The position numbers and the translations under genes were made by a program. Below the pieces are notes generated by a model that saw nothing but the letters and a program-made list of their open reading frames with translations, was not told the origin of the DNA and did not search any database. Of a stretch of DNA of 64,000 bases, positions 13,728-35,837 are shown one piece after another; the stretch's first letter is position 1; each line of letters begins with the position of its first letter. Where the stretch lies: the IMG/VR virus record IMGVR_UViG_3300032245_001860, positions 248,001-312,000 of that record, one strand, 5' to 3'.

Positions 13728-16700
13728 ATGGCAGACTTAAATTTTCCCTTAAATCCACAAGTAAATGACTACTATACCTTGAATGGTAAAACATTTAGGT
13801 ATGATGGCTCAAAATGGCGCTTTGCTACACAGAGTATAGTTACAGTAAATTCTGGAAGTGCATTGACATCATTAAATAGTCTAACAAATTCTGCCCAAGA
13901 TTTTTCTGTTGGTGTTTCTGGTTCTTTATTTAATATTTCTTCTGCTGGTAACACTCATACATTTAATATCCCAATTGCTGGTTCTGGTTCCACTGGTTTA
14001 ATTTCTACTGGCGTTCAAACAATATCTGGCGCAAAAACATTTACTTCTTCAATTGTTGGAGATTTGACTGGTACTGCTACTACTGCAATAAATTTAAATA
14101 CAGTTTCAGCAGCTTCAAATGCTACACACTATGTTTTGTTTTCTCCAGCAAATGGTGGAAGTGGCGTTGCTGTTTCTTCTGATACAGGACTTACGTTCAA
14201 TCCATCATCAAATACTGTTTCACTTTCTACACTGTCAGCCACAACTGTCAACACATCTACAGCAAGTGTATCAGGTTCTACTGCCTCAACAAATACATCT
14301 ACTGGTGCATTAGTAGTTACTGGTGGAGTTGGCATAGGCCAATCTATTTCTATTGGTGGAAGATTGCAGTTGTTCAATGGTTCTAACTATACAGCTTTCG
14401 TTTCATCTGCATCAGGAAATACAGTTTATACTTTACCAGCAACAACCCCAGCTACAGGTACTTCTGTTTTGCAATCAGACACAACAGGAACTTTGTCATG
14501 GGTAGCTATGACTGCTACAGGTGGTGCATCAGGTAATACTGCAGCAAATGTAAATGTTAATTCTGCTTCAACAAATGCAAGTCATTTTTTAATTTTTAGT
14601 CCAACAGCAACTGGATCTGGAGTAGCATTATCATCAGAATCAGCTTTAGTTTACAATCCATCTACGGACATATTGTCAGTATCTGGATTAGCAGTAACAT
14701 CAGGAACTTCTTCTACTTCTTCTTCAACTGGTTCGCTTATTGTTTCAGGTGGCGTTGGAATTGGTGGCACACTTTTTGTAGGAAACACTATAGGTGTAAA
14801 CTCTGGCGCTTCTGGATTGTTGTTGCAAAAATTAGTTGGGGGCAATTATGGTGCAATTTACTCTGCGGGTGTAACTCCAAGCGCAACAAACTACACAATG
14901 ATTACTGATGGTACTTCAGTTAACTTTAATGGTACTGGTGGAGTTTATTTTAATATCAGTAATTCAAATAAAATTCAAGTTACCACTAATAACATTAATA
15001 TTGTTCCTACAGCAGGTTCTTCATCTACTTCTACTGGATCTTTGACAGTGGCAGGTGGTGTTGGTATTGGAGGTAGTTTATTTGTTACTTCTGCTACTAA
15101 TATATCAGGAGTAATAATAAATTCAGGAGTTATTACTGGTTCTTTAACAGGAACTGCAACATCAGCTGGTTTTGCAACAACTGCTGGGTTAGCCACGACC
15201 GCAGGACTTGCTACAACTGCTGGATTTGCTACAACAGCAACAAATATCAATGTTGTTTTAGCTTCATCTAATGCAAGTCATCCAGTTTTATTTACTCCAA
15301 CTTCAGGTTCAGCATCTGGTTTAGCAGTATCTTCAAACAGCACACTCGTATACAATCCGTCAACAGACTTGTTGTCAGTATCTGGTGTAGCAATAACTGT
15401 TTCTACCGCTTCTACATCAACTTCCACTGGTGCATTAGTTGTTACAGGTGGTGTTGGCATAGGGCAATCTGTATCTGTCGGTGGTAGATTACAGATGTTT
15501 AATGGAGCAAATTACACAGCATTTGTTTCATCTGCATCTGGCAATACTGTATATACTTTACCTGCAACTTCCCCAGCTACAGGTACTTCAGTATTACAGT
15601 CAACTTCTGCTGGTGTATTAAGTTGGGTTGCTATGACGAGTAGTTCTTCTGGAAATACTGCTCAAAATATTGCTATTAATACTGCTGGAAATGTTAATGT
15701 TTTCCATCCAATTCTATTTACACCATCTTCTTTATCTGCTGGTTCTGCTGTTTCAAGTGATACAACTATAACTTTTAACCCTTCTACTGAAACATTAAAT
15801 GTTTCTGGTTTAGCAATTACTTCTGGTACTGCTTCTACAAATACAACAACTGGAGCATTGGTAGTAAGAGGAGGTCTTGGTGTAACTGGTCAATTAACTT
15901 TTGCTACAGCGTCACTTGGATTTACTGGTATCACATCAAACCCATCCATGTCATTTATTGGAAATACTTCAAGTGCTCCAATCACTATGACTGTCCTAAC
16001 TGACAATTCACTCAACTGGGAAGGTTCACAAGGATCAGTATTTTCTATTGATAGCAATTTATCTTCTGGTGAAATTTTCTCTGTCAGTGATATATCTGGT
16101 TTACCTATAATTTCTGCTTCTGCTGGTCAAACTGTAAATATCAATGAATTTGGTGGATATACACAAATTGGTAATGGGTCAATAAACTCATCTTCTACAT
16201 CTACTGGTTCTCTTGTTATTGCTGGCGGTTTAGGATTCACTGGAAATGCTTTTATAGGCGGCACTACCACTATTGTAAATGGAGCGAACAGCACTTCTAC
16301 TGGTTCTGGATCTTTAGTTGTCAGAGGTGGAATTGGAATTACTGGCAACGCTTTTATAGGCGGTACTACTTCTGTAACAAGCACATCAGCTTCTATAAAT
16401 ACTGGCTCCGGCGCATTAGTAGTTTCGGGAGGTGTAGGTATTGGACAGTCTGCTTCAGTTGGTGGCAGATTACAAATGTTCAACGGTGCGAATTATACTG
16501 CTTTTGTTTCATCTGCATCTGGTAATACAGTTTATACTTTACCAGCTACATCTCCCGCAACAGGATCTTCAGTATTAATTTCTTCTTCTGCTGGTGTATT
16601 GAGTTGGGCATCACTTACTGCTGTTGGTTATACTGCTTCTGGAACAGCTGATGGAACAGTCCAATTTAAATCTGGAAGTGGTTTTGCTGGTACAAATAGT

Positions 16701-18416
16701 TTATTCTTTGATACAAACTTACTTGGATTAAGAGTTTCAGGTTTCCCCGGAGGCAATACACCTTCGTCAACAGATGCTGTGTTGAAACTTGAAGCAACTG
16801 TAGGCTCATTCAATGGAAGTGTGAATGGTACTTATATTGCAGTAAATGCTCCTACTGGATTTGCTGGAGATTTAATGAATCTTCAAGTCAACGCAATCTC
16901 AAGGTTCAGGATTGATAATACAGGTGCTGCCACTGCTGGTACGTTTAATTTTAGTGGTACATCTTCAATCACAAATGGATTGAATAGTTCTTCTACAACT
17001 ACAGGAACATTAACTGTTGCTGGTGGTGTTGGATTTACTGGTAATGCCTTTATTGGTGGAACTGTTAATATTACAAATACAACATTGCCTGGATATGGAT
17101 CTACTACTTCTGGTGCATTAGTTGTTGCTGGTGGAGTTGGCATTGGTGGAAGTGTTTATATTGGTGGTCAGATTGGTGTAGGTGGAACTCTTGACTATAA
17201 TGCGCCTGGCAATGTTGCATATTTTGCTGGCAATTCTAATTCATACACTCAAGTTATAGTTCATAATCATAATGCTGGTAATAATGCATCATCTGACTAT
17301 ATTGTAAGTAATGATAGCACAACAGATACCACTTTCTTTGGCGACTTTGGCATGAACTCTTCTGGCTGGGCTGCTACAACATCTGCTTACAATACAGCAA
17401 ATGCGGTTTATTTAGCATCCAACTCTGGTGATCTTGCTATCGGAACTCTTACAACTAATCCAATCAGATTTTTCTATAATAATGGTACTTCTGATGCTGT
17501 AGTTTTTGGTGCAACAGCTGCAACCGTAAACTATGGCACAAACTCTACATCAACAACTTCTGGTGCATTGCAAGTCAAGGGTGGTTTGGGTATCACTGGA
17601 AACGCATTCATTGGTGGTACTACTTCAATTACAAATACAACTGCTTCAACTTCAATTGCTTCAGGTGCTTTGGTTGTATCTGGTGGTGCTGGTATTGCTC
17701 AAACATTATTTGTTGGTGGAAGCATATCAAATGCAAATTATTTCTATTCTGGTGGAAATAATTTTGCTAAATCAGGTCAGGCTCAAGGCGATATTCTTCT
17801 CGATAATAACGCAAATGACACTCCTGGTGTTTTGTATTATTACAGAAATAATACTAACTTTGGTACTGATGTATTCGCAACTGGTATTGGGTCAACAAGA
17901 TATAGAATTGTCAAAGACTTAAATGAATCTGGTGGATCTGAACTTTGGAGCATTGACAGAACTGGTGTTGTAACTCAAACTGCTTGGGCTCCTGGTGAAA
18001 TTATCAAAATGACAGTGCTTGTAGGCGCTGACCTGACAGGAGGTAGTACAACAACAATTAGTACCACATCTGATACTGATGTTGCATCATATTCGTATAC
18101 ACCAGTTTCTTCAAACTCATATTTAGTGATCGAATTTACAACAAGATATTCTGTAGCTGGTGCAGCAGCAGACGATTTTGTTTCAAGAATAGCTGTTGAT
18201 GGAGCAGAACAAAGTTACAATGTTCAAGTTTGGATCAATGGTGCTGGTGGTGGCACAAGATCTGGCACCTTATTCCCATTGATGGCAAGATACACGAATT
18301 CCAATACTACTGCCAAAACAATTTCAGTAACTGTCAGAAGAGGCACTTCTGACGATAATGCAACAGTTTACAAAGATACAACCACTGTAATGAAAATCAC
18401 GGAAATTGGCAGATAA
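13728..18416 (+). CDS. giant modular fibre protein (1562 aa)
   Basis: N-terminal LNFPxNP...YDGSKW motif shared with 25335; three GGRLQxFNGxNYTAFVSSASGNTVYTLPAT modules; C-terminal YTPVSSNSYLVIEF...MKITEI tip domain. Confidence 0.8.
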   Translation: MADLNFPLNPQVNDYYTLNGKTFRYDGSKWRFATQSIVTVNSGSALTSLNSLTNSAQDFSVGVSGSLFNISSAGNTHTFNIPIAGSGSTGLISTGVQTISGAKTFTSSIVGDLTGTATTAINLNTVSAASNATHYVLFSPANGGSGVAVSSDTGLTFNPSSNTVSLSTLSATTVNTSTASVSGSTASTNTSTGALVVTGGVGIGQSISIGGRLQLFNGSNYTAFVSSASGNTVYTLPATTPATGTSVLQSDTTGTLSWVAMTATGGASGNTAANVNVNSASTNASHFLIFSPTATGSGVALSSESALVYNPSTDILSVSGLAVTSGTSSTSSSTGSLIVSGGVGIGGTLFVGNTIGVNSGASGLLLQKLVGGNYGAIYSAGVTPSATNYTMITDGTSVNFNGTGGVYFNISNSNKIQVTTNNINIVPTAGSSSTSTGSLTVAGGVGIGGSLFVTSATNISGVIINSGVITGSLTGTATSAGFATTAGLATTAGLATTAGFATTATNINVVLASSNASHPVLFTPTSGSASGLAVSSNSTLVYNPSTDLLSVSGVAITVSTASTSTSTGALVVTGGVGIGQSVSVGGRLQMFNGANYTAFVSSASGNTVYTLPATSPATGTSVLQSTSAGVLSWVAMTSSSSGNTAQNIAINTAGNVNVFHPILFTPSSLSAGSAVSSDTTITFNPSTETLNVSGLAITSGTASTNTTTGALVVRGGLGVTGQLTFATASLGFTGITSNPSMSFIGNTSSAPITMTVLTDNSLNWEGSQGSVFSIDSNLSSGEIFSVSDISGLPIISASAGQTVNINEFGGYTQIGNGSINSSSTSTGSLVIAGGLGFTGNAFIGGTTTIVNGANSTSTGSGSLVVRGGIGITGNAFIGGTTSVTSTSASINTGSGALVVSGGVGIGQSASVGGRLQMFNGANYTAFVSSASGNTVYTLPATSPATGSSVLISSSAGVLSWASLTAVGYTASGTADGTVQFKSGSGFAGTNSLFFDTNLLGLRVSGFPGGNTPSSTDAVLKLEATVGSFNGSVNGTYIAVNAPTGFAGDLMNLQVNAISRFRIDNTGAATAGTFNFSGTSSITNGLNSSSTTTGTLTVAGGVGFTGNAFIGGTVNITNTTLPGYGSTTSGALVVAGGVGIGGSVYIGGQIGVGGTLDYNAPGNVAYFAGNSNSYTQVIVHNHNAGNNASSDYIVSNDSTTDTTFFGDFGMNSSGWAATTSAYNTANAVYLASNSGDLAIGTLTTNPIRFFYNNGTSDAVVFGATAATVNYGTNSTSTTSGALQVKGGLGITGNAFIGGTTSITNTTASTSIASGALVVSGGAGIAQTLFVGGSISNANYFYSGGNNFAKSGQAQGDILLDNNANDTPGVLYYYRNNTNFGTDVFATGIGSTRYRIVKDLNESGGSELWSIDRTGVVTQTAWAPGEIIKMTVLVGADLTGGSTTTISTTSDTDVASYSYTPVSSNSYLVIEFTTRYSVAGAAADDFVSRIAVDGAEQSYNVQVWINGAGGGTRSGTLFPLMARYTNSNTTAKTISVTVRRGTSDDNATVYKDTTTVMKITEIGR

Positions 18417-19108
18417 TGGGAACGAAATATAATCCAAGTATTGTGAGAAATGGATTAGTATATTATATTGATGCTGCAAACTCCAGAAGTTATAGTGGGT
18501 CTGGAATTACTGCTTATGAACTCAAATTAAGTGGAATTGGTGGAACTTTAGTAAATGGAGTTGGATTCAGTAGTGCAAACAATGGAAGTTTTATTTTTGA
18601 TGGTACAAATGACTATATCCAAATTCCAGTGAGTTATATTCCTTCAGGTAATGAAGTTTCAGTTTGCTTATGGAATTTTGGAACTACAGCGCAAACTTCT
18701 TCAGTGTTTTCAGCGCATTCAGCTGATGAATTTAGAACAATTAACATACACCTGCCTTGGAACGACAATGTAGTTTATTGGGATGCTGGATTTTCTGCCG
18801 GAACATATGACAGAATAAATACTGCAACTTTGACAAATACTCAATGGCAGGGTTGGCATCATTGGGCATTTATAAAAAATGCAACGACTGGTGTCATGGA
18901 ATTGTATTTAGATGGTGTCTTAAATGTTTCTGGAACATCAAAAACACGCACTATGCCTACCCCATCTCAAGCTTTCATTGGTAGATTTCAAATATCATCA
19001 CCACTATATCATATAGGAAGAGTATCACTTCTTCATCTTTACAATCGTGCATTGACAGCTCAAGAAGTATTGCAAAATTATAATGCCACAAAGAAGAGGT
19101 ACATTTAA
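18416..19108 (+). CDS. LamG/ConA-like lectin-fold protein, array 1 copy 1
   Basis: GLVYYIDAANSRSYSGSG...FDGTNDY...WHHWAF...LYLDG...YNRALTAQEVLQNY. Confidence 0.8.
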   Translation: MGTKYNPSIVRNGLVYYIDAANSRSYSGSGITAYELKLSGIGGTLVNGVGFSSANNGSFIFDGTNDYIQIPVSYIPSGNEVSVCLWNFGTTAQTSSVFSAHSADEFRTINIHLPWNDNVVYWDAGFSAGTYDRINTATLTNTQWQGWHHWAFIKNATTGVMELYLDGVLNVSGTSKTRTMPTPSQAFIGRFQISSPLYHIGRVSLLHLYNRALTAQEVLQNYNATKKRYI

Positions 19109-19740
19109 TGGGCCTCAAACATCATCCAAGAATAGTAACAAATGGAATGTTTCTTTACTATGATGCTGCTAATACAAGAAGTTATAGCGGTAGTGGTGTA
19201 ACTATCAACAATTTGTTTTCAGGTTTTGGATGTACTCTTGTTAATGGCCCCACATACTCATCAAATAATGCTGGTTATTTTTCTTTTGATGGTACTAATG
19301 ATTATGCTCAACTCACTCTACCAGCACTTACAAATTGGAGTTTTTCATTCTGGATCTATAACCATACAGTTCCTGTCTCTGAAAAACAATTATTATCTAC
19401 ATCTGGCGATGTTGTTGGCTTGAGTATGATAAGCACCAAATATAATATATGGAATGGTGCTACTAACGTCACTGGTGCATCTGTAGCGCAAAGTACTTGG
19501 TCTAATGTTGTTTTTATTAATGTAAGTGGTATAGCAAGTACTATTTACATTGATGGAGCTCTTGATAGAAGATTTTCCACAAGCAACAGTATAAGCGCTG
19601 GTTCTGCTCAACTTATGGCTATTCTTTCAACTTTAAGAAACACTCAAGCTTATTTAGGCAGTTTTTTAGGATACAACAGAGCTTTGTCATCTCAAGAAGT
19701 TTTACAAAATTATAATGCCACTAAAAAGAGGTATCAATAA
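19108..19740 (+). CDS. LamG/ConA-like protein, copy 2
   Basis: Same terminal motifs; TAATG overlap. Confidence 0.8.
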   Translation: MGLKHHPRIVTNGMFLYYDAANTRSYSGSGVTINNLFSGFGCTLVNGPTYSSNNAGYFSFDGTNDYAQLTLPALTNWSFSFWIYNHTVPVSEKQLLSTSGDVVGLSMISTKYNIWNGATNVTGASVAQSTWSNVVFINVSGIASTIYIDGALDRRFSTSNSISAGSAQLMAILSTLRNTQAYLGSFLGYNRALSSQEVLQNYNATKKRYQ

Positions 19741-20471
19741 TGGGCGTAAAATCTGGACCAAGAATTATAAAGGATTCATTGATAATTCATCTTGATGCTT
19801 CAGTGTCCAGAGCTTATAGTGGCTCTGGCAACACTTGGTATGATATAAGTGGAAATAATAATCATGGATATTTAGTTAATACTCCGACATTTAACTCGTC
19901 AGGCGCAGCAAGTAATTTTTCATTTAATGGAACTGACGAATACGTTGATATCACCACGTCACCAAATACATTTTCATATAACAGATCGAGTTTTACAGTA
20001 TTGGGATGGGTAAGATTCACTTCATTGCCAAATCCTTTTTATGCTGGGACTATAATTGGAAAATGGAATATTGGTTCTGATCAATTCAATGAATTTATAT
20101 TAAATACACAAGATGAAACAAGAACATTTGTCTTAGGTGTTGATTTTGATGATTCGCTGTCTCCAAATAATGCTGTTAGCGATATTGTTACAACAAATAC
20201 AACTTACACTACAAATATTTGGTATCATGTTTGTGGTACTTTTAATAATGGTGTCTCCTCAATTTATCTTAATGGTATATTAGAAAATTCTGCAACAAGT
20301 GCATACACAACAATAAGAACAGATAACACAGCTTATTTAAGATCTGCACTATTTTACACTAATTTATATTCTGTAGGTCAAAGATCAATAATACAGATGT
20401 ACAATCGTGCGTTAACAGCTCAAGAAGTATTGCAAAATTACAATGCTACAAAGAGGAGGTATGGTCTCTAA
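19740..20471 (+). CDS. LamG/ConA-like protein, copy 3
   Basis: Same motifs, WYHVCGTF..IYLNG; TAATG overlap. Confidence 0.8.
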   Translation: MGVKSGPRIIKDSLIIHLDASVSRAYSGSGNTWYDISGNNNHGYLVNTPTFNSSGAASNFSFNGTDEYVDITTSPNTFSYNRSSFTVLGWVRFTSLPNPFYAGTIIGKWNIGSDQFNEFILNTQDETRTFVLGVDFDDSLSPNNAVSDIVTTNTTYTTNIWYHVCGTFNNGVSSIYLNGILENSATSAYTTIRTDNTAYLRSALFYTNLYSVGQRSIIQMYNRALTAQEVLQNYNATKRRYGL

Positions 20472-21178
20472 TGGGCATTGATGTTGGACCTATTGAAGTA
20501 GTAGATGGATTAGTATTTCATATAGATGCTGGAAATACAAGAAGCTATTCTGGTTCTGGTATTACTGTTAATGCTTTGGTAGGTATTGGGGCCACTTTAG
20601 TAAATGGAACAGGATTCAGTACTTCAAACTCTGGGTATTTTTCGCTTGATGGTACAAATGATTATATTAATGTACCAAGTGGATTTACCAATTATTTCAA
20701 AAGTAATGATAATTGGACTGTAGATTTATGGGTCAAGCTTCTTTCGCAAACAGCAGGTGAGCCAGTGTTGGTTTCAGCAGGACCTTCAATAGGTTACTTT
20801 GATTTGTTTTTAGAAGTTGGAGATAATCAAATATATTTTGCTGCAGGACGTGGTTCAAATTCTGGATATATTCAAAATCAAAATGTATCAAGTACTTTAG
20901 GATACAATTTGACTACTGGTTTTTTCAATATAGTATTTATAAAAAACGGCACTTCATCTGGCAGTGTTTATGTTAATTCAATAAATATTCCAATGTCAGT
21001 AAGTGGCTCAGGTCTTTCAAGTATGCCAAGTATCAATGAAGACTTAAGAATTGGAACATTTAAACAGTCAGGTTTTGAATTGCATGGATTTATTCCTCAA
21101 GTCCAAATATATAACAAAGCTTTATCAGCCTCAGAAGTTATTCAAAATTATAATGCCACAAAAGGGAGATATAAATAA
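20471..21178 (+). CDS. LamG/ConA-like protein, copy 4
   Basis: Same motifs; TAATG overlap. Confidence 0.8.
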   Translation: MGIDVGPIEVVDGLVFHIDAGNTRSYSGSGITVNALVGIGATLVNGTGFSTSNSGYFSLDGTNDYINVPSGFTNYFKSNDNWTVDLWVKLLSQTAGEPVLVSAGPSIGYFDLFLEVGDNQIYFAAGRGSNSGYIQNQNVSSTLGYNLTTGFFNIVFIKNGTSSGSVYVNSINIPMSVSGSGLSSMPSINEDLRIGTFKQSGFELHGFIPQVQIYNKALSASEVIQNYNATKGRYK

Positions 21179-21840
21179 TGGGACTTGATCATTCTCCCTT
21201 AATTGTGACTGATGGATTGTCAGTATATCTTGATGCCGGAAACACAAGAAGCTATTCTGGATCTGGCACAACAGTATATGACTTGAGTGGATCTGGAAAC
21301 ACATCTGCGCTAACAAATGGGCCAACATATTCTTCTTCAAATTTAGGTTATTTTGTGTTAGATGGAACAAATGATTATATAAATGTAAATTCTCTCTCAA
21401 ATATTTTATCAAAGACAGCGTACACTAAAATTGCTTATTTTTATGTAACAAGTTTTTCTACTGCCAATAATATTGTTAGTGGTGGAGTTTCAGGCGAACA
21501 TGCATTTTGGTTAGCAGCTTCAAATAGATTGTATGGCGGTCACAATGGTGCATGGACCACTGTAACAGGAGGTACAATTCTTTCTTTGAATACATGGTAT
21601 TTTGGCGCAATATCATATAGTAGTTCAACTGGATGGAAGCTTTACTTAAATGGAAGAGAAGATGCTTCAAGTGCAAATACAACTACTTTCAATGGCAATC
21701 AAGAAATATTGATTGGTGCTTACGGTGCTGGAAATTACTTTACTGGAAGAATATCCAATGTTCAAGTTTACAACAGAGTATTATCCGCTACAGAAATAGT
21801 ACAAAATTACAATGCTACTAAAAAAAGGTATGGGCTTTAA
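21178..21840 (+). CDS. LamG/ConA-like protein, copy 5
   Basis: Same motifs; TAATG overlap. Confidence 0.8.
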   Translation: MGLDHSPLIVTDGLSVYLDAGNTRSYSGSGTTVYDLSGSGNTSALTNGPTYSSSNLGYFVLDGTNDYINVNSLSNILSKTAYTKIAYFYVTSFSTANNIVSGGVSGEHAFWLAASNRLYGGHNGAWTTVTGGTILSLNTWYFGAISYSSSTGWKLYLNGREDASSANTTTFNGNQEILIGAYGAGNYFTGRISNVQVYNRVLSATEIVQNYNATKKRYGL

Positions 21841-22520
21841 TGGGCATTGATTATAATAATGTTATCGTCACTGATGGATTAGCTGTTTATTTAGATGCAG
21901 CAAATTCAAGAAGCTATTCAGGCTCTGGAAATACTTGGTACAATTTAATTTCCGGGGCTATTGGTGGAACTATTGTAGGAGTAGGTTATTCTACTTTAAG
22001 TGGTGGGTATTTTAATTTTACAGGAAGTCAATATATGACTTTTGCTTCTACTCCACCAATAGGACAGTCAACTTTGTCTTCTACTGTTGAAATTATATCT
22101 TACAGGAATTCAGCTGGTCCATTTGAAGTTATGTTAGGAGGTGGCCCATATAGCTTGAATCAAAGTTACTGGTTTGGTCATCGTGCAAATAACAATAATT
22201 TTATGATGGCTCATTGGGCTAATGACTCTGATAGTGCTACCCCAACAACAAATATAGCTTGGAATCAATATGTTGCTGTTTTTGATAATAGTATAGGAAG
22301 AAGAGCTACATATTATAACAGTGCAATCTTGAATAATGAAGCATCTGGTGTGAACAATACATCTAATTCAAGTTATTTTTTAGGAGCATATAGAGAATCA
22401 GGTGGATCTCCTCAATATCATTATAGTGGGAGAATAGCTTCATTGAAAATTTACAATAGAGTTTTATCACAAGCAGAAATCACACAAAATTATAATGCCA
22501 TGAAAGCAAGGTTTAGATAA
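21840..22520 (+). CDS. LamG/ConA-like protein, copy 6
   Basis: Same motifs; TAATG overlap. Confidence 0.8.
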   Translation: MGIDYNNVIVTDGLAVYLDAANSRSYSGSGNTWYNLISGAIGGTIVGVGYSTLSGGYFNFTGSQYMTFASTPPIGQSTLSSTVEIISYRNSAGPFEVMLGGGPYSLNQSYWFGHRANNNNFMMAHWANDSDSATPTTNIAWNQYVAVFDNSIGRRATYYNSAILNNEASGVNNTSNSSYFLGAYRESGGSPQYHYSGRIASLKIYNRVLSQAEITQNYNAMKARFR

Positions 22521-23848
22521 TGGGAATATCTGCTGGACCCAATTCTATTTCTGATACTCTGGCATTTCATATTGATCCAGCTAACCCAAGATCGTATCCA
22601 GGCTCAGGAAATACAATTTATGATTTATCAGGCAATGGAAATACAAGTTTCTTTACCAATGGTGCATTTTACCAGAACTATTCAAAAGGTGCAGTAAATG
22701 TAGATGGAAATGATGACTATATTTCAACTCCTTTGTTCAATCTTACATCTCCAGTCACTGTTTCTGTATGGGTGAAGAATGTAATTAATGATTCTCCTGT
22801 TTTTAGTGCTTCTGGTCCTGGAGTTACCTACGGAAACAATGAGGTTATTCATTATTTTAGTGGTAAAAGCATTCTAATCGCTGGAAATCCTGCTGCTGGA
22901 AAATATTTTCAATTTCCGCAATTGAATTTGAACCAATGGTCTAATTTAGTGATGACCAGAGACGCCAGCAACAATATGTCAGTATATCTAAATGGAATAG
23001 GTTCTACATCAAACACACAATCATATTCTAACACCTTACAAATGAACCAGATAGGAAGATATTCTGCATTTACCAATATATATAATGCAAAAGGCTCAAT
23101 TGGTGAAGTAAAGATTTATAATCGTGCTTTATCAGCTTCAGAAGTTTTGCAAAATTATAATGCTTCCATAAAAAGATATTCACCAGAAGAAAATATTGTT
23201 ACTAATGGGTTAGTACTTAATTTAGACGCTGCAAATTATCTTTCTTATGCTGGTTCTGGAAATACAGCATTTGATTTGAGTGGTTTTGGAAATACTGCAA
23301 CTCTGGTTAATGGCACTGGATTTACTGGAACAAATGGTGGAACGTTTCTTTTCGATGCTACTAATGATTATATTAGTATAGGCACTGCTTCTTCTGTAAA
23401 ACCAACACAATTAACTTTTGCATGTTTATTTAAAATAAATGCAATAACATCGGTCAATGTAATAGCTGGAAAGCAAGGTGTTGGTAATGGTGCTGCATCT
23501 TACGCTTTAGTAGTACAAAATGGACAATTACATTTCAGGATAAGTAATTCAAGTGGCACAGAATACAATGCGTCAACTGCTTTTTCAAATACATCAAGTT
23601 ATAATTATGCAGTTGGGGCTTATGATGGTTCAAATTTAATACTTTATCTCAATGGGGCATCTGTAGGTGGTTCTTCCGTAGCTATTTCAATTGCATATTC
23701 TGACTCATATCCTTTGTTAATGGGTTATTATGCCAACTCGATTGCTACTAATATGAGTATTGGTTCTTTAAAACTATACAATCGAGTTTTATCTGCCCAA
23801 GAAATTCAACAAAACTTTAATGCTTTACGTGAGCGGTATAACATTTAA
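22520..23848 (+). CDS. LamG/ConA-like protein, copy 7 (two fused domains)
   Basis: Two complete units joined at QNYNASIKRYSPEENIVTNGLVLNLDAAN. Confidence 0.8.
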   Translation: MGISAGPNSISDTLAFHIDPANPRSYPGSGNTIYDLSGNGNTSFFTNGAFYQNYSKGAVNVDGNDDYISTPLFNLTSPVTVSVWVKNVINDSPVFSASGPGVTYGNNEVIHYFSGKSILIAGNPAAGKYFQFPQLNLNQWSNLVMTRDASNNMSVYLNGIGSTSNTQSYSNTLQMNQIGRYSAFTNIYNAKGSIGEVKIYNRALSASEVLQNYNASIKRYSPEENIVTNGLVLNLDAANYLSYAGSGNTAFDLSGFGNTATLVNGTGFTGTNGGTFLFDATNDYISIGTASSVKPTQLTFACLFKINAITSVNVIAGKQGVGNGAASYALVVQNGQLHFRISNSSGTEYNASTAFSNTSSYNYAVGAYDGSNLILYLNGASVGGSSVAISIAYSDSYPLLMGYYANSIATNMSIGSLKLYNRVLSAQEIQQNFNALRERYNI

Positions 23849-23850
23849 TT

Positions 23851-24537
23851 ATGGGACTTGCACATTCTCCAGCTGTAATTGTCGATGGTTTAGTATTGTA
23901 TCTTGATGCATCCAATTCAAGGAGCTACTCTGGATCTGGACTTACTGTAAATGGGTTGGTTAGCGGTATTGGTGGATCTCTTATAAATGGGGTTGGATTT
24001 ACAAGCTCAAATAGTGGAAGTTTTGTTTTTGATGGCACTAATGATGGTATGTATTTCTCTACATATAATTTTTCAACTGGTGATTTTACTATGGAAGTTT
24101 GGTTGAAATTGAATGCATATCCACCTACTGCCAATTCAGCTATTATAGCTAATAGAAACGGCACAACTGACGATGGATGGCTTTTTGATATAAATAGTAA
24201 CCAAAAAGCCAGATTAGTTTTTCAAAATAATGCTGGCACTGTTTACACTATTGAAACTTTAGATATTATAAATTTGAATCAATGGACAAATCTCACTGCT
24301 ATAAGATCAAATACTTCCTTATCATTTTACAGAAATAGTATATTTCAAGCAAGTACATCCTTTCCGTCAAACTACAATATTAATTCGCCAATATCAAATG
24401 ATTATGTAGGTAGATATCAAAGTTCAAGTGGTTTTTTGAGTGGAAATATATCGAAAATACAATACTACAACAGAGCCTTATCATCCACAGAAGTCCTCCA
24501 AAATTATAACACTACAAGAAAGAGATTTGGATTGTAA
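23851..24537 (+). CDS. LamG/ConA-like protein, copy 8
   Basis: Same motifs; 2-nt gap from previous stop. Confidence 0.8.
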   Translation: MGLAHSPAVIVDGLVLYLDASNSRSYSGSGLTVNGLVSGIGGSLINGVGFTSSNSGSFVFDGTNDGMYFSTYNFSTGDFTMEVWLKLNAYPPTANSAIIANRNGTTDDGWLFDINSNQKARLVFQNNAGTVYTIETLDIINLNQWTNLTAIRSNTSLSFYRNSIFQASTSFPSNYNINSPISNDYVGRYQSSSGFLSGNISKIQYYNRALSSTEVLQNYNTTRKRFGL

Positions 24538-25250
24538 TGGCAGTAGGATATAACCCAAGCATTGTATCAGATGGATTAGCTTTGTATATAGATGCTGCTA
24601 ATCAAAGAAGTTATTCTGGATCTGGAAATACTTGGTACGACCTTTCTGCAAATTTAAACCATGCACAAAAAATTAATTCTCCAAATTACATAAATAATGC
24701 TGGAATTGGTTTTACATTTGATGGAAATGGAACTAATTATTTTGATCTTGATAGTAAGTCATCCTTAGTAAATGGCAATGCAGGAACTGTTGGTGGATGG
24801 GTTAGATTTAATTCTGCCCCAAATAATGCCAACTATGTTTTTGTCAGTTATGGTGGAAATGCATATGGCGGAGGTTTTTTGCTTATATATACAGGATTAG
24901 ATGGTGCAAATAGAGGACTTACATTTCAAGCTTTTGGTGGAAGTATAAGTCCTTCGGTTGATTGCGGTATTAGCTATGCTGCATCATCAATATACGCTGG
25001 ACAAGACATTCATATGGTTGCAACTTGGACCACATCTGAAGTCAAACTTTATTTAAACGGACAGCTCAAAGCTACAGCTGCAAACAATGCTGCAATTCCT
25101 TCAAAATCTACATTGAGAATAAGTAGTGAAGGCGGTAGATCAAGAGGTGTTAATGGCAACGTATACACTTGCTCAATCTACAATCGTGCCCTTTCACAAC
25201 AAGAAATTCTCCAAAATTTCAATGCTACAAGATTTAGATATGGAATATAA
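24537..25250 (+). CDS. LamG/ConA-like protein, copy 9
   Basis: Same motifs; TAATG overlap. Confidence 0.8.
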   Translation: MAVGYNPSIVSDGLALYIDAANQRSYSGSGNTWYDLSANLNHAQKINSPNYINNAGIGFTFDGNGTNYFDLDSKSSLVNGNAGTVGGWVRFNSAPNNANYVFVSYGGNAYGGGFLLIYTGLDGANRGLTFQAFGGSISPSVDCGISYAASSIYAGQDIHMVATWTTSEVKLYLNGQLKATAANNAAIPSKSTLRISSEGGRSRGVNGNVYTCSIYNRALSQQEILQNFNATRFRYGI

Positions 25251-25334
25251 GACATTTTACATTCCATGAAGAAATATTTTATAACACAAATAGCGAATAA
25301 ATAAGAGAAAAGAAAAAATTCTTTAGGTTTCTTT

Positions 25335-26093
25335 ATGGCAGCACTTAATTTCCCAACATCCCCAGTAACAAATCAGATTTACACAGCTAATGGTAAATCT
25401 TGGAGATGGGACGGCACTGCATGGAAAACCTATAATACCCTAAGCATTTCAGGAGGAGGAACTGGACTAACATCTATAACCACCGGAAATGCTTTTTTAT
25501 CCTCTAATTCAGCAGGTACAGCTCTTACATATAGAACATTTACAGCTGGATCTGGAATGCAAATTACTATATCTGCTAATGATGTTACTTTTGCAGCAAC
25601 AGGAGTAACAGCAGGAACAGTAACAGGAACAGGTACCTCAGGATATGTACCTGTTTGGACAGCTTCAGGAACAGCACTTACTAATTCGCTTATAAATCAA
25701 GTTGGATCTGTCGTTAATGTAAATGGATCTATTAAAGCAGTAACTAAAAGCTTTAAGATTGATCACCCATTAGACCCAAAAAATAAATATCTGGAGCATG
25801 GATCCCTTGAAGGACCAGAACATGGAGTTTATCAAAGGGGAACAGCATCAGGCTACAAAGAAGTGGAAGTTCTAATGCCTGATTACTTCGTTGCACTATG
25901 CGAAGACAATTATTCAATCCAAATCACATCAAGAATCAATGCACACCTTTACGTTTCTCAAAGTAACAAAAATGGTTTTAAAGTGAAAAGGATTGGAGGG
26001 TTAATTTTCAGTAATCAATATATTGAGTTCGATTATTTTATTGTTGGAGAAAGAAAAGACGTAAAAATTGAACTAATACAATCTAAAAAGTAG
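25335..26093 (+). CDS. short fibre protein with C-terminal KSF-IDHP/LEGPE domain
   Basis: LNFPTSP...WDGTAW N-terminus; KSFKIDHP...HGSLEGPEHGVYQRG. Confidence 0.7.
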   Translation: MAALNFPTSPVTNQIYTANGKSWRWDGTAWKTYNTLSISGGGTGLTSITTGNAFLSSNSAGTALTYRTFTAGSGMQITISANDVTFAATGVTAGTVTGTGTSGYVPVWTASGTALTNSLINQVGSVVNVNGSIKAVTKSFKIDHPLDPKNKYLEHGSLEGPEHGVYQRGTASGYKEVEVLMPDYFVALCEDNYSIQITSRINAHLYVSQSNKNGFKVKRIGGLIFSNQYIEFDYFIVGERKDVKIELIQSKK

Positions 26094-26108: not shown

Positions 26109-29100
26109 ATGGCAAACGAACCGGAAAATTTCGCAGATAAAGTTATCAATTCATTGATAAAACAATCAAAAGCAGTAGATTTAACTGCTGAAGAAGTGGC
26201 TGCTCAATCAGCAGATCCAGTACCTTCTGGAGATTTTGTTGCTTATGGAGCCCCGTCTGGAGGCGGTACAGGCCCAGGTGCAGGTGGTAATAAAGATATT
26301 GTTATCATTCCAGGCTATACTGGAACTGCTGCAACTTCTGTATCTCAAATTAACTTTTATTGGTCTGCTCCCAATACACCAGATGCCACTGGTGTTGATA
26401 ACAATATCCGTGCTACTATCTATAACTTTGCCACTAACCCTGGATCAGGTGTAACAAGATCTGTATTAGCATTTGGTGGATACGACGGAGCAAATCAATA
26501 TAAACCAACACCTACGTATGGTGGTGGTACTGGTATCACATCTAAAATCTTTATTGATCCATTTTTAGGTAAAATTGATACTGATTTTATTGGATTCAAT
26601 AGCACTGGTGTAGCATCAACAACTGATGTAGGTACCATGTCTTACGATACCACTCAAAATAGAATTAGAGTTGGTACTGGAGCTGGATCTGCAAAAACAG
26701 TTGCTTACACAGATGATGTGTCATCAGTAGCTGGTTTAGCTACTACAGCTCAAAATGTAAATATTGTCACTACTAATACTGGCACATTCTATCCACTATT
26801 TACAAGTTCTTCGACAACTGCTTCGGGAGCAGCAGTCTCTATAGATGGTACTGATATTTCCTATAACGCTGCAACTAATGTACTTACTGCTGGTCAATTC
26901 AGTGGACTTCACACTGGTGCTGCTGCTACATTTACAAATATTTATGGTCCATTAACTGGTACCGCAACAACTGCACAAAATGTTTTTGTAACTAACCAAA
27001 CTACTGGTACCTTCTATCCTGCATTATCAGTTTCTTCTGCCACAGCTAACGGCATAGCATTAGGTGTTGACGCAAATCTTTCTTTTGATGCTGCCACTAA
27101 TGTTCTTACTGCAGGTCAATTTAGTGGCTTAGCTACAGGAGCTGCTGCTACATTTACAAATATTTATGGTGCATTGACTGGTATAGCTACAACTGCTGGT
27201 TTGGCTACAACATCACAAAACGTAAATATTGTTACTGCTGCTACTGGTACATTCTATCCTTTATTTACCAGTGCATCCACAACTGCATCTGGTGTTGCAG
27301 TATCTATCGATGGTACTGATGTTTCTTATAACTTTGCAACTAACACATTTACTGCTGGTACTTTCTCTGGAAACTTATCTGCTACTGCTGCTACCGCTAC
27401 AAACTTCTTTGGCACACTAACAGGGAACGTTACTGGTACAGCAACAACAGCTCAAAATGTCAATGTAGTATCTGGTGCAACTGGTACATTCTATCCATTA
27501 TTTACAAGTGCTTCAGCAACTGCATCAGGTGTAGCAGTATCGATCAACAGTACAAATATATCTTACAATTTTGCTACAAATACACTTACAGCTGGTACTT
27601 TCTCTGGAAACTTGTCAGCAACAGCTGCAACCGCTACTAACTTCTATGGTACTCTCACAGGCAATGTAACAGGTACAGCTACAACATCACAAAATGTATA
27701 TGTTACAGCACAAACTACTGGAACATTCTATCCAACATTCTCTGTATCTTCATCAACAGCAAATGGAATTGCTCTTGGAGTAGATGCTCAACTTTCATTT
27801 GATGCTGCTACAAATACCTTAACATCTGGCAAATTTGATGGTTTGCATTCAGGTTCTGCTGCAACATTCACAAATATTTATGGAACTCTCACAGGAAATG
27901 TAACTGGTACTGCTACTACTGCACTTAATTTATCTTTACAATCCACTTCACAAAATGCAAGCCATTTAGTGCCATTTACCTTAAACTCAGCTACATCAGG
28001 AAGTGCGTTATCTACAAACGCTGGTTTCTCTTATAACCCAAATACTGGAGTATTAACTGTTGGAACTGTCACTGGTACTATCTCTGGTATTGCTTCAACT
28101 TCTGCAAGTGCATTAGTTGCAGCTGCAGCGTCTAATAGTACTCATGCAGTTATATTTAGCACTCCTACAACATCAACTGGTCAAGCTGGTGTAGCTTTAT
28201 CATCAAGCTCTAATATAACTTACAATCCTTCTGGCAATGGAACTTTCTCATTAGGTTCAGGTCAGGCCACAATTAATGGTCTTACATTAGGCGCAACATC
28301 TAATACAATAACTACTTCTTCAGGCAACTTGACTCTTAATGCAAGTGGTGGGACTGTCGTTATTGCTGCTAACTTAAATGTCCAAGGTACTGCAACATAT
28401 ATTGATTCAACAACTCAAACCATAACTGATCCTGTTATAGTACTTGGTTCTGGTGCAGGTGGTACTCATACCAATGTAACAGATACTGTAGATAGAGGTG
28501 TTGAGTTTAGAAGATTCTCAGGATCCGCAATCACTGGATTCTTTGGTCAATCTAATGCTTCTGGTAGATTTACATTCATTCCGAATGCAAATGTGACAGC
28601 TGCAAATACATACACTGGTTCTGTTGGTGTAATAGAAGCCAACTTAACTGGTACTGCTGTTACTGCGACTAACTTCTTTGGTCCTTTAGTTGGAAATGCA
28701 GCTTCTGCTACAACTGCAGGTTTAGCTACAACAGCTCAAAATCTTAATATCGTAGCAACTACAACTGGAACACTTTATCCTTTATTTGCAAGTGTTTCAA
28801 CTACTGCATCTGGTGTAGCAGTTTCTGTAGATGGAACTGATATTTCCTATAACGCAGCCACCAATACTCTTACAGCTGGTCAGTTCAGTGGACTTCATAC
28901 TGGTACTGCAGCTACGTTCACTAATATCTATGGTCCTTTGACAGGAACTGCAACTACAGCTCAAAATGCTTATGTAACAGCTCAAACAACAGGTACATAC
29001 TACCCTGTATTTACCAACACTTCTTCAACCACCAATGGTGTTGTATTAAGTGTTGAATCAACACTTACATGGGATGCAGCTACCAATACTCTTACTTCTG

Positions 29101-31039: not shown

Positions 31040-34000
31040 ATGGCAACAGATGTCATTATTGACCCAGCCAATGGTCAGATATATTGGAATGATGGCACTG
31101 GATCACCTCAATCTATTTCTATCGGTGGTAATGCTCAAGATGTAATTAATGTTACAGGCTATAGTGCTGCCTTTTCACCTGGATCTACACCTGCAGCATC
31201 TGTAGCAGGAGTTCTTGTAAAATTTACTGATGCAGCAACTGGAACCCTAACTCCTGGCACTAATGCTTACGAGTTAGGGTCTGGTTCTTTAAGATGGAAA
31301 ATATTTGGCACTACCACAAATATTTCCGATAATGCTTCTGCTTTAGGTACTAACACCTTTTCATTAACTACTGGTTTAGTGCAAGTCAATGGCGGAATTG
31401 CAATCTCAGGCAATGTTGGCATTGGACGAACACTATTTTATTATAATCCAAACGACCCAAGATATTTTGTAGGCTTTAGATCTTCTGCTTCTTTAGCGAG
31501 TACACAGGATTATATATTGCCACTCGCCTATCCAGCTACAGGATCTTCTGTTTTACAATCTGACACTGCTGGTACTTTGACATGGGTTCCTATGACAACC
31601 AGTGGAGCAGCATCTGGTGTTACTGCACAAAATATAAATATTGTAAGTGCAACTACTGGAACATTTTTTCCTTTATTCACTAATACATCATCTACAGCTA
31701 ATGGTATTTCGGGTGTAGCAGTTTCTGTCGATAGTAATTTCTCTTTTGATGCTGCAAGTAATGTATTAGTTGTTGATGGTGCTACTTTAGGAGGCTTGGG
31801 ATTAACTACCACTCTTGCTTCTTTTGATATTGGCAACACATCATCAATAGCTCAAACTTTAAACTTTTCAAATACAACTACTGGACAAGTTCAATATAAT
31901 TTTGGCACTGCTTCTGCAAGTGCTTCTACAGCTACATTCTTTGGATCAGTCAACTCCAATAGAATGATCTTAAATGTAAACTCTGCTGGTAACTTATATA
32001 TCCAAACAAACCAAGTTAACGCAAGAGTCAGATTATTTCAAAACAATACAACTGGTAACGTATCTATATTTGGCACTGGTGGTGGAACCTTATACTTAGG
32101 TGAAGATACCATCACAAATAATGCTGATATTTCTATCAGAGGATCAGTTCTTAATGGTGGTGGTGGAAATGTTAGAGCTGCTATATTCACACTTTCTACA
32201 GCAACCTCAAATGGGTCAGGTATTGGCGGAACTTTAGTTTTTCAAACAAGTACATCAGGCAATGCTACAGCTAATTTGCCTAATGCTCTCAGAACAAGAT
32301 TGAGAATTGAAGGTGCTGCAACTGGTACTTCAAACCTTGAAAGTATTATAATTTTAGGTGATGCCACTTCTGGCACTGCTTGGTCATCATATTTAAGAGG
32401 GGTTGATGCTTCTGGTACTGATGTTGAAGCTGGCGAAATTCAAATTCAAGCAGGTAGATCAACAGGTACAGGAGCTGCAAGAGGAATAAGCTTTTATGTT
32501 TCTCCTTCTGGTACAACTTCCTCTACCATAAATGCTGCAAGTCAAATAGCAAGATTTTCCTCAACTGGTTTTACTATTTACTCAACTACTAATGCTACAT
32601 CTACCACTTCAGGAGCATTGATTGTTACTGGTGGTGTTGGTATTGGTGGCTCTATATTCTTAGGGAGCCAATTAACTCAAACTTATACTCCTGTAACAGG
32701 TGCAGGATTAGATCATTCTGTGTTTTTGCAGAGTAACCCATTTCCTACCAATGTCGGTGCAGTAATTCAAGTTGGATTTGGAACTGCTTGGGATGGGTCT
32801 ACTGCTGGATTTTTTAATGGATCTCCTAATGGTACATGGTTAGGAATTAGTGCTGCAACAGCAAACACAGCTGATTTCTTAAGTTTTCAAGAAAATGGAA
32901 CATCGAGATTTACTGTAGGTGCTGGCGGAACAACAAGAATTGCAGCTACAAATACAGCAACATCCACTACTTCTGGAGCTTTAATTGTTTCTGGTGGTGT
33001 GGGTATTAATGGAAATGCATTTATTGGCGGAACTACTACGATAACAAACACCACCTCTTCAACTGGTAATTCAACTGGTGCGTTTGTTGTATATGGTGGC
33101 ACAAATATTGGCGGTAATGCATTCATCGGTGGCACCACTGTAGTTCTCAATACGACAACTTCAACAAGTACAGGTACTGGCGCTTTAGTTGTTAGAGGTG
33201 GCGCAGGAGTAGCTGGTACATTAAATGTTGGGACTAACGTAGTTGTAGGAGCTCTCAATTATGCAGCAACAAATGTTTTGGGAGCATTCCAATCAAGTGT
33301 CAATAGCTTTAATCAGTTTATTGTCCAAAATACGAATAATGGTTCGTCTGCTTCCGCTGACTTTGTTTTAAATAATGATTTATCTTCTGACGCAGCATAT
33401 TATGCAAATTTGGGAATGAATTCCAGTGGCTGGGCAACTACAACATCGCCTTTCAATACAGCTAATGCAACTTATTTAACTGCAACTACTGGAGATCTTG
33501 TTTTAGGTACAACTACTGCTAATGCTATTAGAATTGGTACTGGCGGGACAATATTTGATACAATTAATATCAATGCTGCTGGTACTGCTGTATCTATAAC
33601 ACCAGCTACAGCGTCTGGAACCACATCTACTGGTGCATTAACAATAGTTGGTGGTGTAGGTATTGGCGGAAGTGTCAATATTGGCAAAACTCTCAATTTA
33701 TGGAATCCTGCTTACACATTCTCAACCAATTTAGCATCTGGCGCAGTTACAGCAACTACAACTTATATTTTACCAACTGCATACCCCTCTGGTACTGGAA
33801 CTTCATATCTTTCAGCAAGTACAACAGGTGTAATGGCTTGGGTAGCAGCTCCTACAAGTGGAGGCGGTACTCCTGGTGGTTCTACAAGACAAATTCAGTA
33901 CAACAATGCTTCATCTTTTGCTGGCGCTGGTGGATTTGAATTTACAACAGGTGGTATAGCAAATACTGTTTCAATATTTTCAACTTCTGGAACAGGATAT

Positions 34001-35836: not shown

Positions 35837-35837
35837 A

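Follow-up and report, generated by a model that had tools for sequence, protein, structure and literature searches.

Related systems

The tailspike of Pan3, a cyanopodophage with a 38-kb genome, has been solved as an assembly of 3 copies of gp14 and 3 copies of gp15 (PDB ID: 9VYH). Gp15 is a 270-aa LamG-type beta-sandwich without a Pfam match, and its gene begins one base past the stop of the tailspike gene. The locus described here resembles this arrangement in that the first array gene, W1, is also a separate gene directly after a fibre gene and also encodes a LamG-type sandwich. It differs in that gp15 is a single gene without the end motifs of the array.

LamG domains also occur in T4-like cyanophages. 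S-PM2 p176, a virion structural protein, has at its C-terminal end two LamG domains that carry the motifs of the array proteins, and virion proteins of S-RSM4, Syn1 and S-RIM44 also have C-terminal LamG domains. In S-PM2 one or two domains are fused to a long protein, whereas here there are nine separate genes. S-CREM2 ORF86, again in contrast to the nine, is a single 335-aa protein; its gene has a one-base overlap with the long tail fibre gene, and the protein was detected in purified virions by one peptide at 3% coverage (PMC10665884). The T4-like cyanophage domains and ORF86 fall in the same sequence family as the array proteins, at 28-33% identity.

In the cultured Flavobacterium myovirus immuto, the run gp052-gp051-gp050-gp049 has a fibre gene ending in the domain we call KSF, as does the 1131-aa fibre gene of our locus. 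The immuto fibre gene is overlapped by two small free-standing LamG genes annotated "structural protein," and a longer protein with a terminal LamG domain follows. Immuto has two to three modules against nine plus three here.

Several adsorption proteins per genome, and modular exchange of such proteins, are known from CBA120 (tailspikes 1-4), PhiK64-1, phi92 and the mosaic fibre genes of T-even and lambdoid phages, in which conserved segments beside variable binding parts permit recombinational exchange. Proteins of these systems have a distinct N-terminal anchor that bears a large enzymatic or fibrous binding part, whereas an array protein is one small lectin domain, and what is conserved is this domain's own terminal strands together with its helix. 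Diversity-generating retroelements (DGRs) and the invertible fibre segments of Mu (Gin) and P1 (Cin) likewise diversify phage adsorption proteins at their receptor-binding end. In A1002, many copies of small fibre subunits, belonging to two different proteins, line up along a single extended protein, to which they dock by beta-sheet augmentation (PMC13730344). Such chain-like fibres, found in the podophages A1002, GP4 and VP1, in which many small subunits share one carrier, are a possible model for the array, although their subunits differ in fold, a rope-like carrier was not identified here, and the likeness is one of idea only.

The LamG array and its surroundings

The sequence analysed is a 64,000-nucleotide window of a 316-kb IMG/VR record of a giant freshwater phage. 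The ORF list and Pfam give nine co-oriented plus-strand genes with ten Laminin_G_3 domains at window positions 18416-25250 (Table 1), inside a 37-kb block of fibre genes. A genome scan of the whole record finds only 13 matches to PF13385, all of them within this fibre cluster, so the clustering of LamG genes is not due to chance. About nine fibre-like genes make up the cluster together with twelve LamG genes, three of which form a second array at 34437-36524. In that second array, X2 and X3 also exceed the PF13385 cut-off, and X1 is under it in the protein scan yet was matched in the genome scan.

A TAATG stop/start overlap is found at eight of the nine array gene starts, one of the eight being the junction with the 1562-aa fibre gene; the sole exception, W8, has a 2-nt spacer. 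Eight of the proteins begin with MG and W9 with MA. Of the remaining 32 plus-strand junctions in the window, 3 likewise have a one-base overlap. The gene and domain counts, the TAATG joints and the Met-Gly starts are as the original prediction had described them from the sequence. Neither promoter-like nor terminator-like sites in the array rise above a shuffled control, so internal ones are not indicated, and no signal peptide was found in the LamG proteins. In the source sample, error-free contigs support the gene order of the window, and the longest of them covers 19107-23418.

Table 1. Fibre genes, LamG genes and recombination boundaries in the window
Feature	Position	Strand	Start joint	Remarks
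1562-aa fibre-like gene	13728..18416	+		Stop overlaps W1 start
W1, 230 aa, cassette type C	18416..19108	+	TAATG	98% identical to same-position gene of relative L085
W2, 210 aa, cassette type D	19108..19740	+	TAATG	99% identical to L085
W3, 243 aa	19740..20471	+	TAATG	Unrelated cassette here in L085 (38% identity)
W4, 235 aa, cassette type E	20471..21178	+	TAATG	94% identical to L085
W5, 220 aa, cassette type B	21178..21840	+	TAATG	99% identical to L085, 81% to L093 (position 3), 61% to L006
W6, 226 aa	21840..22520	+	TAATG	Replaced in L085 (best match <=35% identity)
W7, 442 aa, two fused domains	22520..23848	+	TAATG	684-aa gene at this position in L085 (32% identity)
W8, 228 aa	23851..24537	+	2-nt spacer	45% identical to L085 gene at same position
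W9, 237 aa	24537..25250	+	TAATG	Starts MA; replaced in L085 (best match 37% identity)
Recombination boundary	19740..19822	+		Collinear 93.6% L085 match (15582-19822) stops ~80 nt into W3 conserved N-terminal segment
Recombination boundary	20400..20471	+		95% L085 match (20400-21922) restarts ~70 nt before W3 stop, in conserved C-terminal segment
Recombination boundary	21840..21922	+		W6 conserved N-terminal segment; L085 identity lost up to 25175
Recombination boundary	25175..25250	+		W9 conserved C-terminal segment; L085 identity back (84% over 25175-27703)
252-aa mini-fibre	25335..26093	+		N-terminal motif as on 1562-aa fibre; C-terminal KSF domain
1555-aa repeat-rich fibre gene	26109..30776	+		KSF domain at end
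1131-aa fibre gene	31040..34435	+		KSF domain at end; second LamG array directly after
X1, LamG paralog, 243 aa	34437..35168	+		Divergent; without QNYNA motif; Gly-rich C-terminal tail
X2, LamG paralog, 222 aa	35168..35836	+	TAATG (with X1)	
X3, LamG paralog, 228 aa	35838..36524	+		From ATG at 35838; matches Pfam
422-aa fibre-like gene	36554..37822	+		N-terminal domain ~120 aa

Family and fold

All nine array genes score above the curated PF13385 cut-off of 27.6 bits, at 35-114 bits and with E-values from 1.8e-08 to 8.8e-33. In the alignment of the ten domains, the invariant columns are confined to the ends (D19, Y26, G28, S29, G30, T32, Y164, Y209, N210, L213, E217, Q220, N221 and N223), and amino-acid identity falls from 0.57 (N end) and 0.67 (C end) to 0.18 within the core. 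The shared terminal motifs of the original prediction are thus present. Its description of the core as almost unalignable agrees with the low identity and is slightly overstated, since the core can be aligned to the Pfam model throughout (positions 1-150 of its 151). It had also given the conserved termini a docking function. They are indeed shared and in part specific: the first ~27 and last ~8 profile positions belong to the small-protein subfamily and are absent from most giant poly-LamG proteins. However, the C-terminal motif lies within the general Pfam model for its first ten residues (YNRxLSxxEI), and this part is therefore a feature of the fold family, not a special docking tag. The conserved ends are maintained through protein-level selection and not by recent gene conversion.

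We define the small phage LamG subfamily as free-standing proteins of 210-250 aa that match the profile end to end with both conserved end motifs, and the array proteins match it in this way. A search by the two end motifs finds the same small type in at least 524 IMG/VR stretches, usually as tandem arrays right after a fibre gene, and among 80 IMG/VR loci a long fibre-like ORF nearly always precedes them. The fetched loci contain 129 full-length domains, and relatives also have polypeptides in which two to five of these modules are joined. Other phages thus share the array arrangement. No one fibre domain consistently travels with the arrays, KSF being present in 13 of 82 sources, and a conserved docking partner for the LamG proteins was not found. 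The tip domain of the 1562-aa fibre, its last 203 residues, has 71 homologues and no counterpart among the 80 IMG/VR loci.

The AF2 model of W5 (pLDDT 90.5, pTM 0.89) is a beta-sandwich jelly roll with 16 strands and a C-terminal helix, matching LamG-type domains with Z of 20-23. The best structural matches are AbnA domain 4, which was solved bound to an arabinose oligosaccharide, a trans-sialidase lectin domain, and the clostridial HcN jelly roll, and the best sequence matches are 4QVS and the sialic-acid-binding module of NanA. The array proteins thus have a LamG/ConA-like lectin fold, as had been proposed, each being a complete beta-sandwich with a C-terminal helix, and carbohydrate-binding domains are the best structural matches; LamG folds can bind proteins too. 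Pan3 gp15 aligns with the W5 model at Z = 20.5 over residues 1-219, with no sign of sequence homology in that alignment (16% identity) or in the W5 search of solved structures, which misses gp15. A complex prediction of three copies of the fibre tip with W1 scored 0.00, a value that the tool grades as giving no answer for or against docking. No sugar- or metal-binding residues were identified in the array proteins. A neurotoxin relationship was considered and rejected: of the clostridial receptor-binding region the HcN jelly-roll subdomain alone is matched, without the HcC trefoil or the translocation and protease domains, and by single-domain proteins of 210-243 aa; what is shared is the common lectin fold and not a toxin.

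Exchange of cassettes between related phages

The new result is cassette exchange between near-identical relatives at the conserved gene ends. In such relatives, four cassettes are kept at 94-99% identity and unrelated ones (32-45%) occupy the other five positions, with DNA breakpoints inside the conserved stretches of ~80 nt at gene starts and ~70 nt at gene stops. Different cassettes are found at one position among related phages, and a given cassette type turns up again elsewhere in the order and in further genomes, so that the modules are interchangeable, as originally suggested. One fibre-tip family is followed by differing first cassettes (types C, F, H and A), and the second domain of W7 with the start of W8 has 79% DNA identity to L087. 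Within each cassette type, dN/dS is 0.02-0.20, indicating purifying selection. The mosaic comparisons are based on metagenome assemblies; assembly error is disfavoured because L085 and L086, which are independent assemblies, have identical gene order, and because contigs from the source sample back the order of the window. The only role demonstrated for the conserved ends is as boundaries of cassette exchange by recombination.

Other diversification routes were looked for. The record, which is 88% complete, has no PF00078 match for a reverse transcriptase and no PF00239 match for a serine invertase or resolvase, and there are no inverted repeats in 13000-40000. Repeats within the array are merely 61-81% identical, leaving no near-identical template repeat. 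A DGR variable protein and an invertible fibre segment of the Gin/Cin type were rejected on these grounds, and the expectation that neither a DGR nor an invertase operates here agrees with them. Compared with those systems, the variation here lies between genomes and uses old, selectively maintained cassettes, not variation within one genome.

What the array may do

We favour, with moderate confidence, the interpretation that the array is a panel of free-standing LamG/ConA-like lectin subunits of the phage adsorption apparatus. The nine genes are stop/start-coupled to the 1562-aa fibre gene and to one another, and related phages recombine whole variable cores, giving each strain its own combination from a shared pool. 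The subunits may bind cell-surface glycans of differing specificity, and may ride on trimeric fibres as accessory subunits, like gp15 on the Pan3 tailspike. On this view the fold has an invariant pole made of the conserved ends, which are in part generic to Laminin_G_3, may also touch the fibre, and would double as homology arms that make the cores portable. The lectin fold, S-PM2 p176 and Pan3 gp15 together suggest a virion location for the array proteins, and the same support points to glycan binding. If this is correct, cassette swaps could change or widen the adsorption range of the phage.

A possible but less probable interpretation, that of the original prediction, is that near-equal amounts of the nine proteins compete as interchangeable tips for one fibre docking site through the conserved terminal motifs, giving a mixed, bet-hedged set per virion or burst. 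The eight TAATG junctions would suit near-equal production, although one-base overlaps are found at other window junctions too. Most of the invariant end residues are polar (D, N, R, Y, E, Q, N) and so fit a surface better than a buried core, and the outermost profile positions are subfamily-specific, yet part of the C-terminal motif is generic to PF13385. Generic docking would also fit the different first cassettes behind one fibre-tip family, and there is a precedent in the two kinds of A1002 subunit side by side on one "rope" (PMC13730344); against it, the conserved docking partner was not found, and relatives fuse two to five modules per polypeptide, so not every module needs a docking site of its own.

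It is unlikely that the proteins are soluble lectins outside the particle, released at lysis or acting in the infected cell, for example in masking receptors on debris and infected cells or in binding host polysaccharide. They would be suited to this as single domains with no separate anchor domain, and proteomics has picked up a free-standing homologue only once, with a very weak signal. The lack of a signal peptide, the tight embedding in and coupling to late fibre genes, the fused versions that terminate virion structural proteins, and the membership of Pan3 gp15 in a solved tailspike all argue the other way.

Fibre chaperone genes typically lie directly after the fibre gene, as in T4 g37-g38, Mu S-U and lambda stf-tfa. 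The LamG genes have that position, and the cluster has about nine fibre-like genes to twelve LamG genes, so one could imagine assembly chaperones of the Tfa/gp38 kind, one per fibre type and mostly not kept in the virion. We consider this quite improbable. There is no chaperone-family match: a chaperone or gp38-type adhesin was rejected since Pfam gives Laminin_G_3 and weak sialidase N-terminal domain matches only, and the PHROGs matches are to unknown-function and "virion structural protein" families. Moreover, one fibre gene is followed by nine LamG genes, which LamG type comes first does not depend on the fibre tip before it, co-evolving fibre/LamG pairs are not indicated, and a lectin fold with divergent, selectively kept cores fits ligand recognition better.

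That the proteins degrade glycans, as ConA-like glucanases removing capsule or slime, is a very remote prospect: the Pfam family description includes glucanases and some structural matches are glycoside hydrolase domains, but where GH43 enzymes and sialidases are matched, it is in their non-catalytic lectin or carbohydrate-binding domains, the GH16-type ExDxxE motif is absent from all twelve LamG proteins, and the ten-domain alignment has no conserved acidic residue in the core.

Genes following the arrays

The 252-aa mini-fibre is 94% identical to its L085 counterpart, and a mini-fibre also follows the array in L006, L007, L085 and L087. Across the 82 sources scanned, a gene that opens with the N-terminal domain of the 422-aa gene comes after a LamG array 15 times, once in the window and 14 times at other loci, and the same domain is present in fibre genes of 54 of the 82.

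Organization of the LamG array

Behind a 1562-aa fibre-like gene, nine LamG genes (W1-W9 in array order) follow one another much as the original prediction had it, as a translationally coupled array with conserved ends and a variable core; the gene list, the Pfam matches, the stop-start overlaps and the alignment identities all agree with that description. The Pfam cut-off for Laminin_G_3 (PF13385) is exceeded by 9 of the 9. At 8 of the 9 gene starts the junction is TAATG, in which the last A of the preceding stop doubles as the A of ATG, the first being that of the fibre-like gene with W1; the start at 23851 is the only one with a 2-nt spacer. Eight of the nine proteins start Met-Gly, and an AAGAGG-like stretch found 8-12 nt upstream of the next ATG is encoded by conserved C-terminal K-K-R-Y codons. 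When the ten domains are aligned (W7 has two), invariant columns are confined to the two ends, where amino-acid identity is 0.57 and 0.67, versus 0.18 in the core. The array thus drawn looks like a poly-LamG chain cut by TAATG at each domain boundary. One-base overlaps additionally occur at three plus-strand junctions elsewhere in the window.

The window covers bases 248001-312000 of an IMG/VR virus record of 315,852 bp that is about 88% complete, and its DNA is present in freshwater metagenomes of several studies. Its first 37 kb consist of a run of fibre-like genes (998, 2440, 283, 1562, 252, 1555, 1131, 422, and 511 aa), and all 13 of the 13 LamG matches of the whole record fall in this block. 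Promoter-like and terminator-like sites show no excess over shuffled sequence, counts that are consistent with a single long late transcript. For W5, 10-12% of its sampled words occur in two metatranscriptome runs, a weak hint of transcription.

Features of the fibre block and of the genes beyond it
Feature	Positions	Strand	Remarks
2440-aa fibre protein	5539-12861		C-terminal match to T5 L-shaped tail fibre assembly (intramolecular chaperone), phrog_3304, E 1e-11; two copies of a ~100-aa fibre module
1562-aa fibre-like gene	13728-18416		~100-aa fibre module at residues 737-837
Tip domain of the 1562-aa fibre	17805-18413		
Nine LamG genes (W1-W9)	18416-25250	+	210-243 aa each, except one two-domain gene of 442 aa
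W5, the modelled LamG gene	21178-21837	+	
252-aa fibre-like gene	25335-26093		C-terminal KSF domain, ~135 aa
1555-aa fibre gene	26109-30776		C-terminal KSF domain, ~135 aa
Internal repeats of the 1555-aa gene	26700-30150		seven copies of a 300-nt unit plus related families
1131-aa fibre gene	31040-34435		C-terminal KSF domain, ~135 aa
Second array, three LamG paralogs (X1-X3)	34437-36524		directly 3' of the 1131-aa fibre gene
~100-aa fibre module	36554-36940		
Carbon-nitrogen hydrolase	39359-40171		directly after the fibre block
Fe/Mn superoxide dismutase, phage-encoded	44067-44771		both Pfam domains, E 2e-37 and 1.2e-20
DUF3431 gene	44790-45452		
Methyltransferase	47744-48595		
DUF3431 gene	49278-50015		
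Methyltransferase	59145-59993		clear DNA methyltransferase

Fold of the array proteins

The AF2 model of W5, made from a 111-sequence alignment, has a pLDDT of 90.5 and a pTM of 0.89 and consists of a beta-sandwich with a trailing helix (residues 204-218). Its best structural matches are domain 4 of AbnA, whose solved structure contains an arabinose oligosaccharide, the trans-sialidase lectin domain, and, from the binding regions of clostridial toxins, the jelly-roll half. By sequence, the best matches among solved structures are 4QVS (an S-layer-associated LamG), neurexin LNS, the sialic-acid-binding module of NanA, and pentraxins. The array proteins contain no glucanase motif, no conserved acidic core residue, and no signal peptide. 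We take the toxin resemblance to be the shared lectin fold and nothing more. In one related contig (L087, 9993-13405), three LamG genes have precomputed Pfam matches to Toxin_R_bind_N (PF07953) and Laminin_G_3 with no other toxin domain, the former because the jelly-roll fold is held in common.

The PF13385 model stops at W5 residue 207, and since it reaches that far, the motif YNRxLSxxEI is a family-wide feature; what is specific to the small-protein subfamily is the QNYNAxKxRY that follows it and the first ~27 residues. Both domains of W7 fold in an AF2 model from a 14-row alignment (pLDDT 72.5, pTM 0.56), with an inter-domain orientation of such low confidence that the model is mute on contacts between LamG modules. 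The second array includes a divergent member, X1, which is under the Pfam cut-off in the protein scan, is without the YNRALS/QNYNA motif, and ends in a Gly-rich tail of ~25 aa.

Occurrence in other genomes

A scan with the two end motifs finds relatives encoded in at least 524 IMG/VR stretches. Among 80 fetched loci tandem arrays are the rule, nearly always preceded by a long Gly/Ser/Thr-rich fibre-like ORF. The number of LamG domains reaches 14 in 13 kb at one locus (L062) and eight at another (L047), with two to five at most others and seven plus one in a syntenic 358-kb contig (L006). Some contigs have fused modules, two to five per protein. The family profile has 50,797 matches at E ≤ 1e-30 among 1.84 billion protein-cluster representatives, headed by giant proteins in which as many as 30 of these domains occur. 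We gathered 313 distinct full-length LamG domains. Megablast of the array against GenBank phages gives zero matches.

Metagenome assemblies tend to break inside LamG arrays, and arrays should for this reason be under-represented in short-read data. The contigs of three relatives (L088, L089, L090) end one or two genes past the fibre, and the Logan contigs on 18416-24400 have roughly the length of one variable core, their depth peaking at the conserved ends.

Exchange of cassettes among close relatives

For the C-terminal 203 residues of the 1562-aa fibre there are 71 homologues, with up to 97% identity, and the contigs carrying them yielded near relatives of the whole locus. One of these (L085) has a nine-gene array at the same place, in a gene order repeated in an independent assembly (L086). 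Identity to the window is 98, 99, 94, and 99% at positions 1, 2, 4, and 5 and 94% for the flanking 252-aa gene, whereas positions 3, 6, 7, 8, and 9, the seventh being a 684-aa gene, have just 32-45% identity to any window gene. Collinear DNA matches cover 15582-19822 (93.6%), 20400-21922 (95%), and 25175-27703 (84%), and from their limits every break falls within a conserved segment, either ~80 nt past a gene start or ~70 nt short of a stop. A sliding comparison along W3 goes from 1.00 to ~0.5 and back to 1.00, turning at those points, and another pair of contigs (L091, L092) has the same pattern at its middle gene.

Behind a fibre tip 93% identical to that of the window, L087 has twelve genes. 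With cassettes typed at a threshold of 70% identity, one type is found at positions 5, 1, 1, and 2 of four contigs and a second at positions 5, 5, and 3, and the first cassette after a single fibre-tip family is of at least four types. Within a cassette type dN/dS is 0.02-0.20, cores included, and the cores of W3, W5, and W6 recur near-unchanged in other lakes. From the low dN/dS and this recurrence, the variation is a dealing out of old, well-maintained cores, not hypermutation. The proposal that it arises without a DGR or invertase holds up, as the record contains no reverse transcriptase, resolvase, or inverted repeats.

Recent gene conversion within the genome is rejected as what keeps the ends alike: synonymous codon identity is 0.52-0.59 in the ends versus 0.44 in the core, only a slight excess, and no two paralogs match exactly over more than 26 nt. 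Paralog joints in Logan contigs from other lakes are unreliable as evidence of rearrangement, with sides of at most 56 nt at 80% likeness.

Links to the virion and the question of docking

In S-PM2, p176 is annotated as a virion structural protein and has two C-terminal tandem LamG domains with the same motifs as the window. ORF86 of S-CREM2 has a one-base overlap with the long tail fibre gene and was found in CsCl-purified virions, by a single peptide only (PMC10665884). Cultured Flavobacterium phage immuto has a fibre gene with the KSF end of the window's 1131-aa fibre, and overlapping that gene are two small LamG genes that carry the annotation "structural protein". The strongest precedent for a virion link is structural: the tailspike of cyanopodophage Pan3 (PDB 9VYH) has three gp14 spike chains with three chains of gp15, a 270-aa protein encoded directly after gp14, which the W5 model matches with Z = 20.5 over residues 1-219. 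Gp15 differs in having no detectable sequence similarity to the window LamG proteins, and for that reason it indicates a capability of such a protein and not membership in the family.

Possibly the LamG proteins dock onto the fibre through their conserved termini, as the original prediction supposed. In keeping with docking, most of the invariant end residues are polar, and the kind of fibre tip does not dictate which cassette comes first behind it. Against it, no conserved partner was found among the loci, and the fused relatives indicate that not every module needs a site of its own. Nor did a complex prediction help: three copies of the 203-aa tip of the 1562-aa fibre (30-row alignment) with W1 returned "no answer", which speaks neither for nor against binding.

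Two candidates for a universal partner were set aside. No counterpart of the 1562-aa fibre's tip turned up in any of the 80 IMG/VR loci. The KSF domain, which has the signature KSFxIxHP...LEGPE...ERKD at its very end and no Pfam or PDB sequence match, closes a fibre with a LamG gene immediately behind it 11 times across the loci, as well as in gp052 of immuto, and is present in only 13 of the 82 sources; the LamG genes behind KSF fibres are not one another's closest relatives.

Interpretation

No part of phage biology is harder to predict than host recognition, and for most phages of aquatic habitats a cultured host is lacking. Best supported is the reading of the array as a set of lectin subunits belonging to the adsorption apparatus, whose cores phages exchange with one another at the conserved ends of the genes. 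The gene structure, the fold, the setting among fibre genes, the wide occurrence, the exchange with its breakpoints, and the purifying selection are demonstrated; that such subunits bind glycans, are carried on the fibres, and affect host range is what we infer. If they encode adsorption lectins, the arrays are a very common and easily recognized host-range module, and metagenomes could reveal which cassettes it contains, so that phage-host dynamics might be followed. Because breakpoints fall sharply within the conserved ends of the genes, a unit of exchange can evidently be less than a whole gene and lie within one protein domain. The array also supplies, ready-made in nature, a set of small, stable lectins that combine a common scaffold with many binding surfaces.

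A more far-reaching reading, which we put forward tentatively and consider rather doubtful, is that recombination serves to vary adsorption specificity, which would add a third mechanism to DGRs and invertases. In this scheme, free-standing lectins would plug into fibres via one invariant pole formed by the N- and C-termini, the same segments would act as homology arms, and a lake-wide pool of old, maintained cores would be dealt out strain by strain; each phage lineage would then have its own multi-glycan recognition set.

That a phage can have several receptor-binding proteins, and that fibre genes can be mosaic, is well established, and LamG domains are already annotated in cyanophage virion proteins. 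Our literature search did not find tandem arrays of free-standing LamG genes described, nor LamG core exchange at boundaries inside the domain.

Further features of the fibre genes

The tip domain of the 1562-aa fibre has the look of a separate receptor-binding head. Its ends are invariant, the final ITEIGR being kept in nearly all of 30 aligned homologues, an internal patch comes in two or three allelic classes, and between the window and the syntenic contig L006 the domain is swapped. The ~100-aa fibre module is found in fibre genes of 54 of the 82 sources (81 loci and the window), often near the C-terminus of the fibre preceding an array, and in 15 cases it opens the gene directly after one. 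In the 1555-aa fibre gene, the internal repeats are spaced 237-465 nt within each copy run.
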